Positions 10,397 to 51,875 of a stretch of 64,000 nt of DNA are shown piece by piece. The stretch's first letter is position 1; each line of letters begins with the position of its first letter. The DNA lies in sequence record NC_042116.1; one strand, given 5' to 3'. The position numbers were made by a program, and so were the translations under genes. Below the pieces are notes generated by a model. That model worked only from the letters and a program-made list of their open reading frames with translations, was not told the DNA's origin and ran no database searches.

Positions 10397-12298
10397 GTGT
10401 TATATATGATTATTACTAAATCCGTTATTCAAGTACTAGTAGATATTGCTGGTATAAATTCTATTCAAATTCTAAAAGATACCCTTCAAGCCGCTGTTGG
10501 GAATGTTAGTATCGTAAGTTATTCGGTAAGCCCATCAAAGGCAATTCTTTATGTAGAAGCACAACCAACTGAAGGAATGGTTACTTTTGATTTAGCAGTT
10601 AAAGGCGATGGTTATAGCCTAATTCATGTAGTTGAAAGTATTGTTACTGATAATCCAAACTACACAGAAGGATCTGTTGCAGAGGTTTTTGCCGAGAATA
10701 AAACAGATGAACCACTTTCTGCTACTGTAATTATTTTTGATCGTGATCCTAAAATTGATAATATTCTAACAAAAGAATTCAAGTTATCAAATATTAGTAC
10801 TTATGATGGTTTAGTTTCTATCAGTGTTGATGATGGTCTTATACTAATTGAGAAACAATGTAATGTTGTTATTGATTACAGTACTTATAATAAAGAAACA
10901 GGAACGGTGCGTTTTCAACAAACTTCTCGTTCAGAAGATCCTGCATTACACATTACTAGATATACAGAAGAAGAATTGGAAGACTTAAATCGAAGAATTG
11001 AAGAATCCAAAAAACGTAAAAAAGTAATTGTAGATGATTATATTATCAATAAAAAACGTGTACAATTATCTAATATAGAAGTTGTAAATGGTAATGTAAT
11101 GATATTTGATAAAGATAATAAAATTATTTTATTACAAGATGAATATAACCTTGATTATGATCGTGATTCATTTAATACAGATGATGGTACTGTTGTCATT
11201 ATTAGAACGGACATAAAATTGAATCATCTATTAGATACAGGTTTAAATGCACAAATAGATCAAGCTGTTGCTTATGATAAAGAATTATATAGAATTAATG
11301 GAACAAAACTTATTGAAGGTATTATTAATGCGTTTGATGATATTGAACATGATAATTATACATATACATCTATTGAAGACGAGACTAATATTAGCAATAT
11401 TCAAAAAATGAAAGAACTTCTAATCAAGATAAGTGAAGATGAAGATATAACAACTATGAGCCAATCAGTCCAATATCATTATAATGATGAACTACATTGT
11501 TTGAGTGAAAACTCAGAAGTTGATACAGAAGAACTAACATTAACTCAAGAAGAACTTCGTGAATTAACTAAAGTACAACGCAGTAATGAAGTTATTGAAG
11601 TTGAAAATGCAGTAATTAGTTTTGATGCATTTGATAGTTACGCTTCTAAACATCATGTAATTGGATGGGATTTAGCAACACCAAGTACTTTATCAATTAA
11701 GTTTATTGAAGGTATTACTCCAGAAAGTACTATTAGGAAATTTCACGATATGATGGATAATCTTGATACTGGTTGGATAAACAGTTATCAAATGAATAAA
11801 TTAAAATCAGTTGAAGAAAGTACTAAATTCTTAGCCGATCTCAGAAATATGATTATTGATGAAAAAGATATTGCAGATGAATTTATATCTCGTGTAAACA
11901 AGCATAACATATTTGTACGTGATAGCATTTCTAAAATCCGTGCTTCTTTACTTGATATGGAAAATGATTTTGAACGTTCATTAAAAAATGAAGTTAATTT
12001 ATCCATTGATTGGGATAAACTAACTGCCTATGCAGCTAAAAAAGAACGTACTGAACATCGTGTTAAGGGTGTTCGTATTATTTCTGGCAATGATGGTGTA
12101 ACATCTAATGTTGTTCGTGTTAATTCTGAATTCGAAAATGGTGATTTCTTCATTCCAATACATTTACTAACTGATGAAATACGTTCAAAATATGTAATTG
12201 AGAGTTATCCACAATACATTGAAGATGTTCCAGATTACGCATTCCATGAAGTACATTTAAATGGTCACTTCATTCTTATTGAAAATACCGAACTATAA
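10397..12298 (+). CDS. large acidic hypothetical protein
   Basis: 633-aa ORF, GTG start with GGA RBS. Confidence 0.75.
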   Translation: MLYMIITKSVIQVLVDIAGINSIQILKDTLQAAVGNVSIVSYSVSPSKAILYVEAQPTEGMVTFDLAVKGDGYSLIHVVESIVTDNPNYTEGSVAEVFAENKTDEPLSATVIIFDRDPKIDNILTKEFKLSNISTYDGLVSISVDDGLILIEKQCNVVIDYSTYNKETGTVRFQQTSRSEDPALHITRYTEEELEDLNRRIEESKKRKKVIVDDYIINKKRVQLSNIEVVNGNVMIFDKDNKIILLQDEYNLDYDRDSFNTDDGTVVIIRTDIKLNHLLDTGLNAQIDQAVAYDKELYRINGTKLIEGIINAFDDIEHDNYTYTSIEDETNISNIQKMKELLIKISEDEDITTMSQSVQYHYNDELHCLSENSEVDTEELTLTQEELRELTKVQRSNEVIEVENAVISFDAFDSYASKHHVIGWDLATPSTLSIKFIEGITPESTIRKFHDMMDNLDTGWINSYQMNKLKSVEESTKFLADLRNMIIDEKDIADEFISRVNKHNIFVRDSISKIRASLLDMENDFERSLKNEVNLSIDWDKLTAYAAKKERTEHRVKGVRIISGNDGVTSNVVRVNSEFENGDFFIPIHLLTDEIRSKYVIESYPQYIEDVPDYAFHEVHLNGHFILIENTEL

Positions 12299-12306
12299 TA
12301 CCAAAT

Positions 12307-12334
12307 ATACCAGCTTAATCGCTGGTATTTTTTT
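12307..12334 (+). terminator. intrinsic terminator
   Basis: ATACCAGC-ttaatc-GCTGGTAT-TTTTTT. Confidence 0.8.
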
Positions 12335-12380
12335 AATTAAGATTTTTGGAACAGAAAAAAATGATCTGGTATAATAGAAG

Positions 12381-12872
12381 TACAGAAAATTTTAGATACA
12401 ACTCTGATTGACAAGGATTTCCCTTGATGTGATATAAACCTGATCCTATCGAAAAGTAGATGGCAGATGAGTAGTTCAATCAGTACGATGAGCAGATGAA
12501 ACCCGTTAGAGTACTAGCAGTCATACAAAGAGACATAAGACTACGAATCACGGCAATGTGGCTCAATAAAGAAGTGAGATAAGCATATCAACACTTCCTC
12601 GATAGACATATAAGGTCACTTACCAATACGCTAAGGGAGCCAGAAATGGCACAGTACTAGTTTGGTCGAATAGATCAGTACTGAGTGGAGCAATGAGAAA
12701 ACTCCGACCGTTGCATATGACTGTGATAGAGAGAAACCGAGCAACCCGCTTTCGTTCTCCATAATTAAGTACAATGAAGTTGTATCTAAAATTCAGAGAA
12801 ATTCACAATTCGACAGATTCCGACGACTATCATCGTCAGGTATAAAATTAAGTACACGTGTGTACTTTTTTT
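12381..12872 (+). ncRNA. candidate large structured ncRNA
   Basis: ORF-free; upstream TTGGAA..TGGTATAAT; perfect 16-bp helix 12388-12403/12778-12793; terminator AAGTACA-cgtg-TGTACTT-T run ending ~12872. Confidence 0.6.
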
Positions 12873-13063
12873 ACGTCTTTATTCCCCCTGTGGGGGGATG
12901 AAAATACCTCAACAAATCTCGTCAGTATAATAGTATTAAACGTATTAAAAAATGAATTGAGTTGTTTCAGTACAAACGAAGTGAAGTACTGAATAACGAA
13001 AATTCTTTGACATTCGAAGAATGGCAAATCTAGTATAAAACAAAAATTAGAAGGTATAATTAT

Positions 13064-13690
13064 ATGGGTACACGTAATTTAATTGCTGCAATAAAAGATG
13101 GTCAAGTGAAAGTAGCACAGTACTGTCAATGGGATGGTTATTTTGAAGGCCAAGGTGAAGGTATTGCTAAATTTATTCGAGTTTCATTAGCAGAAGAAAG
13201 TACTTCTCAACAATTCCGTGATAATATTAATAAATGTGTGTTTGTTGATGATGAATTTATACGAAATGCACATATTGAATCTGGTCTAGACCCCGATGCA
13301 CAATATGTAGCAATGGGAGATCCCGCACTTAAACTTTATGAAGATAAGTATCCTCAATTTAATCGTAAAACTGGTTCGGATATTTTTGATCTTATTTTGA
13401 ACGGTACTTTTGAACTAAGAGATAATTTTTCTTTTGGTAATGATAGTTTGTGGTGTGAATTTGCTTACATTCTAAATCTAGATAACAATACTTTAGAAAT
13501 CTATACAGGTTTTCAAACATCCCCTTCTGATGATATTCCAGAAATATATCGTCGTTGGGTAAATGATCCAGATAGTGAATATTATCCAGTAAGACTACAT
13601 ACTATTGTTAGTTTTAGTGAATTATGGGAAAATGAAAATTATATGAATGAACTTGCTCAATCTGAACGAGATATTGAGGAAAATGAATAA
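13064..13690 (+). CDS. hypothetical protein (YCxxDGY family, paralog of 15724)
   Basis: MGTRNLI...QYCQWDGY motif. Confidence 0.75.
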   Translation: MGTRNLIAAIKDGQVKVAQYCQWDGYFEGQGEGIAKFIRVSLAEESTSQQFRDNINKCVFVDDEFIRNAHIESGLDPDAQYVAMGDPALKLYEDKYPQFNRKTGSDIFDLILNGTFELRDNFSFGNDSLWCEFAYILNLDNNTLEIYTGFQTSPSDDIPEIYRRWVNDPDSEYYPVRLHTIVSFSELWENENYMNELAQSERDIEENE

Positions 13691-51754: not shown

Positions 51755-51875
51755 GGCGAGTTAGCTCAGAGGTAGAGCACGTAGAAACCAAGGATTCTAG
51801 TACTAGATTCCCGCAGCAACAATAACTCATACTATGATAAAGTCGTGGTCGGGGGTTCAAATCCCTCACTCGCCG
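51755..51875 (+). ncRNA. tRNA interrupted by GCAGCA module (Ile-type loop ATGATAA)
   Basis: GGCGAGT/ACTCGCC, D arm GCTCAGAGGTAGAGC, insert GGATTCTAG-ta-CTAGATTCC-c-GCAGCA, ACT-ATGATAA-AGT stem-loop. Confidence 0.75.

Follow-up and report, generated by a model that had tools for sequence, protein, structure and literature searches.

Large, multiply pseudoknotted RNAs that show strong covariation are rare, and the few known classes, namely RNase P RNA, group I and II introns, OLE, ROOL, GOLLD, and HEARO/omega RNA, have each given rise to a research field. ROOL and GOLLD are reported to form homo- or hetero-oligomers (bioRxiv 10.1101/2024.12.08.627333). A phage-borne element similar to them in being a highly structured, protein-free-looking unit of 500-800 nt that is independent of its neighbours was studied in a 64,000-nt window (the whole stretch of DNA that was analysed) of sequence record NC_042116.1. 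The record is the 354,378-bp genome of the Yersinia jumbo phage fHe-Yen9-04 (Eneladusvirus), which is among the Rak2-like jumbo myoviruses; the window matches this genome at 100%, and a window coordinate equals the genome coordinate minus 248,000. The element, hereafter copy A, is on the + strand, which carries nearly all genes of the phage, and the region is almost certainly a gene for a large noncoding RNA (ncRNA) with multiple pseudoknots that belongs to a previously undescribed family.

The tRNA-rich character of fHe-Yen9-04 (17 tRNA genes in the window according to an Rfam 15 scan at gathering thresholds) is a further likeness to the ROOL and GOLLD systems. However, the element matched neither model at E ≤ 10, its helix plan is different and includes five pseudoknot-type contacts, and it occurs as 3-5 dispersed paralogues per genome, whereas ROOL and GOLLD are single-copy; its carriers also differ, being virulent Rak2-like jumbo phages of Enterobacterales and integrase-led defence islands. 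RNase P RNA (M1) resembles the element in its length of about 400 nt, its closing terminal helix, and a core organised by long-range pseudoknots, and loose look-alikes of three of its conserved stretches were found in the same order (judged by eye). Nevertheless, this candidate was rejected, since no RNase P model gave a match at E ≤ 10, helix P2 closes only the first 80 nt, and in all 49 distinct sequences (100%) the CR-V-like stretch CCCGCUUUC forms local pairs (S2) with the GAGAG that lies 20 nt upstream, four of which covary, and not with the 5' region, as would be the case for a P4 helix between CR-I and CR-V. A group I intron was rejected because the 5' strands of S1 and S2 are merely 14 nt apart, unlike in a P3-P7 pseudoknot with a P4-P6 domain in between, the element is intergenic at all five loci and not inside a gene, and no Rfam intron model matched, and a transfer-messenger RNA (tmRNA) or tRNA-like molecule because no tRNA or tmRNA model of Rfam matched in the region. 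A miniature inverted-repeat transposable element (MITE) or another transposable repeat was rejected as well, because the 16-bp inverted repeat of copy A is found in type A copies only and the similarity between copies lies in the interior.

The initial annotation, which was made from the sequence alone, had proposed a large, independently promoted structured ncRNA that could not be assigned to a family. The first part of this proposal is supported by covariation, by G.U pairs on the + strand, and by a promoter of the main class of the phage, and the second by the lack of a match in Rfam 15 (4227 models, including ROOL, GOLLD, OLE, raiA, HEARO, RNase P, tmRNA, group I and II introns, 6S, and CsrB). 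At gathering thresholds, the 17 tRNAs were the only matches in the whole window. In the region 12250-13070, only chance matches of 12-22 bits, outside the element or at its edges, were obtained at E ≤ 10, nothing was found inside the element in eight other copies at E ≤ 1, and no description of the RNA was found in Rfam 15 or in the literature searched. Membership of copy A in the new family is indicated by helices P2-P14, pseudoknots S1/S2, PK-a, and PK-b, and the near-invariant junctions GAUAGACAUAU, UAAGGGAG, CGACCGUU, and AACCCGC. A chance origin is excluded by conservation in 72 phage records at 280 places, which carries more weight than the folding z-scores (-3.5 for the + strand and -4.3 for the - strand); since both strands folded better than shuffled sequences, the folding energy by itself cannot choose the strand.

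Covariation and secondary structure

Covariation was assessed in 50 aligned non-redundant copies, using alignments A1 (3' domain), A2 (5' domain), and A4. In the 5' domain (P2-P8), 93.0% of 2008 cells were paired and 31 of the 41 pairs had changed on both sides; when the partners were slid by 1-3 columns, only 32-47% of cells were paired, and none of 500 shuffles reached the covariation score. The 3' domain (P11, P14, and S1/S2) behaved in the same manner, with 93.1% of cells paired versus 39-52% after sliding, and 13 of its 19 pairs had changed on both sides. Many G.U pairs were seen, with counts such as 28 U.G and 25 G.U cells within one column each; since they would be A.C if read from the opposite strand, it is the + strand that folds, which matches the promoter. 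Internal structure, a lack of conservation of which among relatives would have refuted the RNA according to the initial annotation, is thus clearly conserved, in the form of about 14 helices and several pseudoknots.

The conserved fold extends from 12404 to 12814, and pseudoknots S1/S2, PK-a, and PK-b are formally supported (Table 1). PK-a and PK-b first emerged from an all-against-all covariation scan and were then confirmed formally on A4. Two smaller long-range contacts, PK-c and PK-d, came from the covariation scan as well; PK-d, in which the neighbouring pairs are invariant, is a presumed contact. According to PK-a and PK-b, the 12-nt 3' tail UCACA-AUUCGAC zips onto two separate upstream loops. 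The pairs of P9 and P10 showed 7-34 double changes in the same scan. It should be noted that in alignment A4 the outer stem of P10 and helix P11 were only 46% and 50% paired, respectively, which was put down to mis-registered columns; the support for P11 comes from A1 (96%) and that for P10 from the column scan. P6 bears a variable insertion that is long in copies A-D and short in copy E and in some orthologues. Judging from these alignments, the element is a compact, ornate RNA with about 14 helices and five pseudoknot-type contacts, and not a DNA repeat.

Table 1. Features of copy A in window coordinates, with pairing and covariation data for the aligned copies.
Feature	Position	Strand	Remarks
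Promoter P1	12346..12375	+	-35-like TTGGAACA, extended -10 TGGTATAAT; promoter scan
P1 5' arm (leader)	12388..12403	+	AAUUUUAGAUACAACU; pairs with 12778-12793; type A only
P2	12404-11 / 12476-83	+	92% paired, 5/8 pairs changed both sides; encloses P3 and P4
P3, variable hairpin	12412-26	+	90% paired, 5/5 pairs changed both sides
P4, hairpin	12440-66	+	conserved loop GAAAAGUA; 92% paired, 7/8 changed both sides
PK-c	12471-73 / 12484-86	+	brackets P2 3' strand; 12472-12485 and 12473-12484 100% paired, 17 and 10 double changes
P5	12489-93 / 12561-65	+	100% paired, 3/5 pairs changed both sides; encloses P6
P6	12503-06 / 12550-53	+	100% paired; CCGC/GCGG in two 7t3 copies
PK-d	AUG 12556-58 / CAU 12607-09	+	12558-12607: G-C in 50, A-U in 5, C-G in 1 copies; 100% paired
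P7, variable hairpin	12571-76 / 12592-97	+	94% paired, 6/6 pairs changed both sides
Conserved junction CUCGAUAGACAUA	between P7 and P8, within 12571..12622	+	
P8, hairpin	12611-14 / 12619-22	+	85% paired, 4/5 changed both sides
Near-invariant UAAGGGAG	12632-39	+	alignment columns invariant
P9, GNRA hairpin	12639-50	+	covariation scan
P10, long hairpin	12652-58 / 12677-83 and inner pairs	+	covariation scan
PK-a	P10 loop GUCGAAU 12665-71 / 3' tail AUUCGAC 12808-14	+	98.5% paired, 7/7 changed both sides, ≤4 pair types (A4)
P11, hairpin	12686-90 / 12702-06	+	96% paired (A1); invariant CGACC next
S1 (H-type pseudoknot)	GUUGC 12710-14 / GCAAC 12741-45	+	100% paired, 2/5 changed both sides
PK-b	UGUGA 12722-26 (in S1 loop) / UCACA 12803-07	+	98.8% paired, 5/5 changed both sides (A4)
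S2 (H-type pseudoknot)	GAGAG 12729-33 / CUUUC 12749-53	+	100% paired, 4/5 changed both sides, 25 G.U cells
P14	UUCUC 12755-59 / GAGAA 12796-12800	+	76-84% paired, 4/5 changed both sides
H hairpin	GACGA 12822-26 / UCGUC 12833-37	+	ends CGUCAG
Intrinsic-terminator-like hairpin	12852-65, U7 12866-72	+	copies A, C, E and several relatives; stems differ
G hairpin	within 12878..12928	+	UUUAUUCCCCC / GGGGGGAUGAA; U/C alternate opposite G
Z box	12909-28	+	ends CUCGUCAGUAU; direct repeat of H 3' end
Last conserved hairpin	12966-73 / 12986-93	+	loop AAACGAAGUGAA; just ahead of downstream promoter

Promoter, 3' module, and movable module

The sequence features on which the initial annotation was based were recovered at the locus. 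The gap free of open reading frames (ORFs) extends from 12299 to 13063, and the terminator of the preceding gene lies at 12307-12328. The promoter consists of TTGGAA at 12346 and a TG-extended TATAAT ending at 12375 (10/12 matches, promoter scan), from which transcription of copy A presumably starts at about 12381-12383. The interior, which had been described as purine-rich and higher in GC, has a GC content of 0.40-0.42 compared with about 0.29 in the flanks, is richer in A and purines, and has an AT skew of up to 0.30. The inverted repeat 12388-12403 / 12778-12793 (16 nt, 100% complementary, arms 374 nt apart), the GACGA/TCGTC hairpin (12822-12837), the terminator (hairpin GTACAC/GTGTAC followed by T7, 12852-12872), and the further C/G hairpin (C5/G6, 12884-12897) were likewise all present.

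The promoter of the element is of the main sigma-70-like type of the phage. This class, TGRAAC-N14-19-TAYAAT, has 40 sites genome-wide, of which the + strand carries about 35, versus 5.6 in shuffled sequences, and a promoter of the TGRAAC type (TGRAAC, A-rich spacer, and TGnTATAAT) precedes each of five paralogues of the element in fHe-Yen9-04. The same class, with a TGAAACG -35, was reported in the genome paper of the related phage CBB as a second, RpoD-like class that is found upstream of DNA-synthesis genes (PMC5259590). Another promoter is situated past the element (TTGACA 13007-12 and TAGTAT 13031-36). The stretch ACGAAAATTCTTTGACATTCGAAGAATGGCAAAT (12994-13036), which is invariant in six type A orthologues and is conserved above the level of the coding flanks, contains a dyad ATTCTT/AAGAAT surrounding the -35 of this downstream promoter, and is likely an operator.

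The initial annotation had the element end at 12900. The element is real, but the conserved unit is longer, reaching about 13000: conservation at the RNA level passes the internal terminator and continues to approximately 12993. The terminator is missing from copies B and D and from the Buttiauxella-type islands (see below); where present, it is either leaky, or the RNA is processed. The alternation of U and C opposite G in the G stem fits RNA pairing. The 3' end of H and the Z box, which are repeats of the YCGUCAR type, vary together by lineage (CGUCAG, CGUCAA, and, in Serratia islands, CGACAA), and this joint change suggests that one factor or guide reads both; no guide sequence complementary to the YCGUCAR repeats was found. 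In the last hairpin, the stems differ, whereas most copies from phages and islands share the loop AAACGAAGUGAA (judged by eye, with no formal count).

The 16-bp inverted repeat had been regarded as the helix closing the RNA. Its perfect pairing is real, but the conserved core of the family is not closed by it: the helix links the leader of type A copies to an insertion at the tip of P14, and is absent from the other paralogue types, the leader being complementary to the module only in type A. In all 11 type A orthologues checked, it was kept with 9-16 contiguous pairs (12-16 pairs in 10 of the 11, and 9 then 4 pairs around a single mismatch in GAP32), with one compensatory double change in IMG/VR genome G001. 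The tip of P14 bears a movable 'UACAAUnnAG' module, which holds the P1 3' arm (12778-12793) in copy A, whereas in copies B-D the module is placed between P8 and P10 and has the loop GAUCCGUCC, for which no complement was found in the phage genome. The P1 3' arm can alternatively fold as a local hairpin, UACAA/UUGUA. In phage 7t3, leader and module lie in different copies: the leader of the copy at 243.8 kb matches the module of that at 325.7 kb over 11 bp. This is a hint that paralogues may pair with one another, but was not relied on; together with scattered 9-10-bp matches, it was too little for hetero-dimers formed through leader-body pairing to be claimed.

Copies in jumbo phages and bacterial islands

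A search of the fHe-Yen9-04 genome with the element revealed four further copies, so that five copies are present at 24.5, 93.3, 174.3, 260.4, and 334.7 kb, all on the + strand and all intergenic. These paralogues were designated types A-E; they share near-invariant blocks in a mosaic manner, and the hairpins between the blocks vary in sequence and not in position. The gaps between the copies are 44-86 kb, and the probability that the smallest gap among five random points on a circle is this large was about 0.02 for fHe-Yen9-04 and about 0.001-0.01 for CBB, G001, and G006, these genomes not being independent. The sequences GGGGGGATG and CAACAAATCTCGTCAG (Z box), located 3' of the core, occur genome-wide only at the five elements. 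Copy C is located exactly where the genes switch orientation to the + strand. The proteins flanking the five copies have no family in common; the flanking genes being unrelated, the element is not the leader of one gene family.

All 72 records matched by blastn (280 places) are Rak2-like jumbo phages, namely those of Escherichia, Klebsiella, Salmonella, Erwinia, Yersinia, Serratia, Cronobacter, Pectobacterium, and 'Xanthomonas', and each of the records contains 3-5 copies. Five syntenic copies on the same strand were found in CBB, GAP32, BF, 7t3, XaC1, Hallingskeid, and two IMG/VR genomes, four copies in 121Q, and three in RaK2; the counts of 3-5 per related genome were confirmed using a covariance model of the 3' domain (R1, E from 1e-14 to 1e-22). 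A first, over-strict pattern search of IMG/VR yielded 21 loci from 9 contigs, mostly of phages already known, whereas the pattern CGACCGTT-N-AACCCGC was over-loose, gave mainly chance matches, and was not used. The paralogue types are old, the traits of types D and E, for example, recurring at corresponding positions across genera; those of type E are a short P6 insert and ACUGG/CCAGU in S2. In type D (genome 24460-24560 and orthologues), a stable hairpin followed by U6-7 stands right after the -10, with stems covarying between phages, and looks like a terminator/attenuator or a 5' protective hairpin. Short hypothetical coding sequences, mostly on the minus strand, are annotated over the element in MK773491.1 (7t3), PQ464595.1 (Kaldavass), and PQ464590.1 (Hallingskeid), and are probably spurious gene calls.

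Copies of the element were also found in bacteria. A blastn search of 5426 complete E. coli genomes, carried out to test mimicry of a host RNA, detected intact copies in two genomes, both in islands, and no match to a host RNA besides these, which ruled out a mimic of ribosomal RNA or another host RNA. A motif scan of about 185,000 species representatives revealed eight more loci, seven of them in enterobacterial genomes or metagenome-assembled genomes (MAGs) (Buttiauxella, Silvania, two Serratia, Enterobacter chinensis, and two Enterobacteriaceae) and the eighth in a 2.8-kb contig labelled as a Clostridium MAG. There was a single copy per genome in the five island genomes searched whole, none in 150 other genomes sampled from the family of a copy-bearing Serratia genome, and none in 72,556 plasmids. 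In the island copies, the promoter is of the same type, the H, G, and Z modules are present, and every core helix persists, with new compensatory changes.

The islands are rare, low-GC, and integrative, have a size of 10-13 kb, and always contain the RNA right after the integrase. The order is a tyrosine or large serine integrase, the RNA, a convergent cI-like S24 repressor, a Cro-like protein, a 286-aa probable membrane protein, an LprI-like protein, and variable anti-phage cargo (Hachiman; DarT with ADP-ribosylglycohydrolase and UvrD helicase; PDC-S73; AbiGi; and PDC-M45). The 286-aa protein, which is absent from the two Serratia islands, has three hydrophobic segments and looks like a membrane protein; it has no named relatives in the Atlas, and no phage homologue of it or of its 257-aa E. 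coli relative was found. No replication initiator was identifiable in the islands. Among the elements tested, the RNA is the only one common to the phage and the islands. In E. coli LR-29-1 (L215 4753-15303), the defence island of about 10 kb is situated beside ffs (the gene of the signal recognition particle RNA), and includes an integrase split by IS3, a PDC-M45-type system (DuOB, DUF488, and mSLOG/DUF4326), and a 700-nt gene-free stretch 3' of the RNA. A perfect 13-bp palindrome, CCCTATAAATATC ... GATATTTATAGGG, lies directly upstream of the island RNA promoter in Buttiauxella (L216 2700-2745) and in loci L218, L220, and L223, and is possibly a repressor site controlling the island RNA.

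Possible roles of the RNA

Parts of the element are present in six public RNA libraries, of which X4, X17, and X18 contain copies of relatives. In the four libraries that were mapped, the metatranscriptome contigs of relatives cover the element, in several paralogue types, at 2-9 times the depth of the flanks, a depth that sums five copies in contigs that break at the borders of the repeats and may include DNA carry-over. Transcription of the element is thus likely.

A host-type RNA polymerase would start at the sigma-70-like TG-extended promoter, at about 12382, and the core fold would be followed by hairpin H and, in copy A, by the terminator, giving an RNA of about 460-490 nt, to which read-through or processing would add the conserved 3' module (G hairpin, Z box, and last hairpin) up to about 12993. 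In the preferred model, the RNA would work in trans as a folded particle, be it a ribozyme or a decoy or scaffold to which proteins bind. Its several genes would provide a high dose in a contest of mobile elements with the host, and the CGUCAR repeats would be the sites of processing or binding by which the 3' end is defined. An undescribed ncRNA family acting as an RNA particle in trans is the best explanation as a whole, with the chances of its being right and wrong about balanced; the role itself, that of a scaffold, decoy, or ribozyme in the conflict between mobile elements and the host, is a tentative proposal, somewhat short of an even chance. Action in trans is preferred since no known primer or leader RNA has a fold nearly as elaborate, since the RNA does not depend on its neighbours, and since two kinds of mobile element that are in conflict share it. 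A bolder version seems unlikely, namely, that the RNA represents a new class of large RNA machine that is catalytic or assembles itself, either as a ribozyme or as a hetero-oligomer of the five paralogues. Giant virulent phages and enterobacterial defence islands would each use it against the other, and the co-varying CGUCAR repeats would be the sites at which it is itself processed or recognised.

Several observations weigh against action in trans. Copies B and D lack a terminator before the next gene, which fits a leader or primer acting in cis equally well, and the conservation of the RNA past the terminators of copies A, C, and E fits such a leader or primer as well as it does a stand-alone RNA. 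A role in cis that depends on position, rather than mere dosage, is suggested by the constant number of copies, their conserved locations, and their even spacing. Phages and islands have no protein in common among those tested, and the trans mechanism is thus a preference. As for transcription, the contigs in the RNA libraries may be DNA carry-over, and their depth may reflect collapsed copies.

The main rival is an RNA-primed replication origin of the ColE1 RNA II or T4 oriF/oriG kind, which has a minor though appreciable probability; a replication origin had also been the alternative in the initial annotation. Here, the transcript from promoter P1 would be a folded pre-primer of about 550 nt, and its G-rich 3' module would remain in an R-loop from which DNA synthesis is primed in one direction. 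The 354-kb genome would thus have five origins, evenly spaced and with the same orientation, and the islands, which lack any replication gene, would carry the same origin and replicate with enzymes of the host or helper. RNA II of ColE1 is about 550 nt long, as is the distance from the start to the Z box, and, like these systems, the element combines a sigma-70-type promoter with a folded RNA ending near G/C runs. The origins of T4 use middle promoters and are multiple in each genome, to which the multiple copies of the element can be compared, and the promoter class of the element was found upstream of DNA-synthesis genes in CBB (PMC5259590). This explanation best accounts for the presence of five (or 3-5) copies on the strand of most genes, with intervals that are conserved and about equal, for the element-specific C5/G6 run and Z box beyond the terminator, and for islands with neither a replicase nor a recognisable initiator. 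However, the five pseudoknot-type interactions and near-invariant junctions far exceed the needs of a primer, the fold is far more complex than that of RNA II, copies A, C, and E have an intrinsic terminator ahead of the putative origin, and the G hairpin tolerates wobble of the RNA type, unlike a DNA motif. In addition, the zero matches among the plasmids searched speak against an origin, as do the GC skew, which tracks gene orientation with no origin signal, and the promoter scan, in which no antisense copy-control promoter, and hence no RNA I-like unit, was seen at the element.

Even less probable is a transcription element acting in cis, a giant leader that modifies its RNA polymerase (processive antitermination, as with HK022 put or Bacillus EAR) or conditions downstream operons, spaced along a genome transcribed almost wholly one way. 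Each copy is co-oriented with the downstream genes and begins a transcription unit, B and D enter the next gene without a terminator, conserved structure continues past the terminators of the other three, and copy C stands at the orientation switch, all of which suits such a leader; nevertheless, known cis-acting antiterminator RNAs have a size of 65-120 nt, the Z box resembles boxA just loosely (by eye), and the element of most islands is directed towards the 3' end of the convergent cI-like gene, where there is no operon to serve. The second promoter directly past the element also makes the downstream genes independent of read-through. Only slightly more credible than the leader, and itself improbable, is RNA mimicry in defence, a special case of the trans model in which the island RNA is an antidote or regulator of an abortive-infection function of the island and the phage copies are neutralising mimics, as with pseudo-ToxI of phage phiTE, or, in the reverse form, the island copy is a decoy titrating a factor that the phage RNAs need. 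As with ToxI and pseudo-ToxI, an RNA is common to a host defence locus and the phage meeting it, here as the sole shared element; the islands hold varied anti-phage cargo with a conserved membrane protein and an LprI-like protein, their RNA copies are intact and under structural selection, and several strongly promoted phage copies suit a dosage contest. Yet type III antitoxins are short repeats and not 500-nt folds, and the element has neither a tandem short-repeat array nor an adjacent ToxN-like gene; no toxin gene is consistently adjacent, the integrase being the only constant neighbour and the 286-aa protein being missing from two islands, and the RNA, universal and multi-copy in the phage clade, is rare in bacteria (2/5426 E. 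coli genomes, 8/~185,000 species representatives, and 0/150 other family genomes). A repeat acting purely at the DNA level, without any function as RNA, be it a protein-binding array, a recombination site, or a mobile MITE-like element, is extremely improbable: the element is dispersed, has a terminal inverted repeat in copy A, and is partly annotated as a repeat_region in one record, whereas the inverted repeat is not common to the other copies, every copy follows a promoter in a single orientation, no target-site duplications or transposase were found, and more than 60 base pairs with compensatory double changes and G.U pairs restricted to one strand effectively refute it.

A trans-acting RNA particle thus remains the preferred reading, and on any of the hypotheses the answer would be new jumbo-phage biology, whether a ribozyme or scaffold, an RNA-primed origin hijacked by satellites, or RNA mimicry between phage and island. 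The significance of the element lies in a fold unmatched in the 4227 models, found in all sequenced members of an entire clade of 350-kb phages, kept as 3-5 distinct paralogues at conserved and evenly spaced positions, and common to phages and the integrase-led anti-phage islands of their hosts; given this distribution, the RNA is a strong candidate for a new functional RNA class. The element is immediately tractable, since E. coli, Yersinia, Klebsiella, and Erwinia serve as hosts for the phages, the RNA has a size suitable for cryogenic electron microscopy, and one E. coli isolate carries an island copy.

Two minor observations concern the surroundings of copy A. The gene immediately upstream (10397-12298) encodes a 633-aa protein with a match below threshold to an RNase E/G thioredoxin-like domain (E = 0.004, 17.7 bits versus a cut-off of 26.8), for which no relative was found in the PDB. 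Among the matches to the tRNA model in the window, two were unusually long, at 49922-50035 (114 nt) and 51755-51875 (121 nt).

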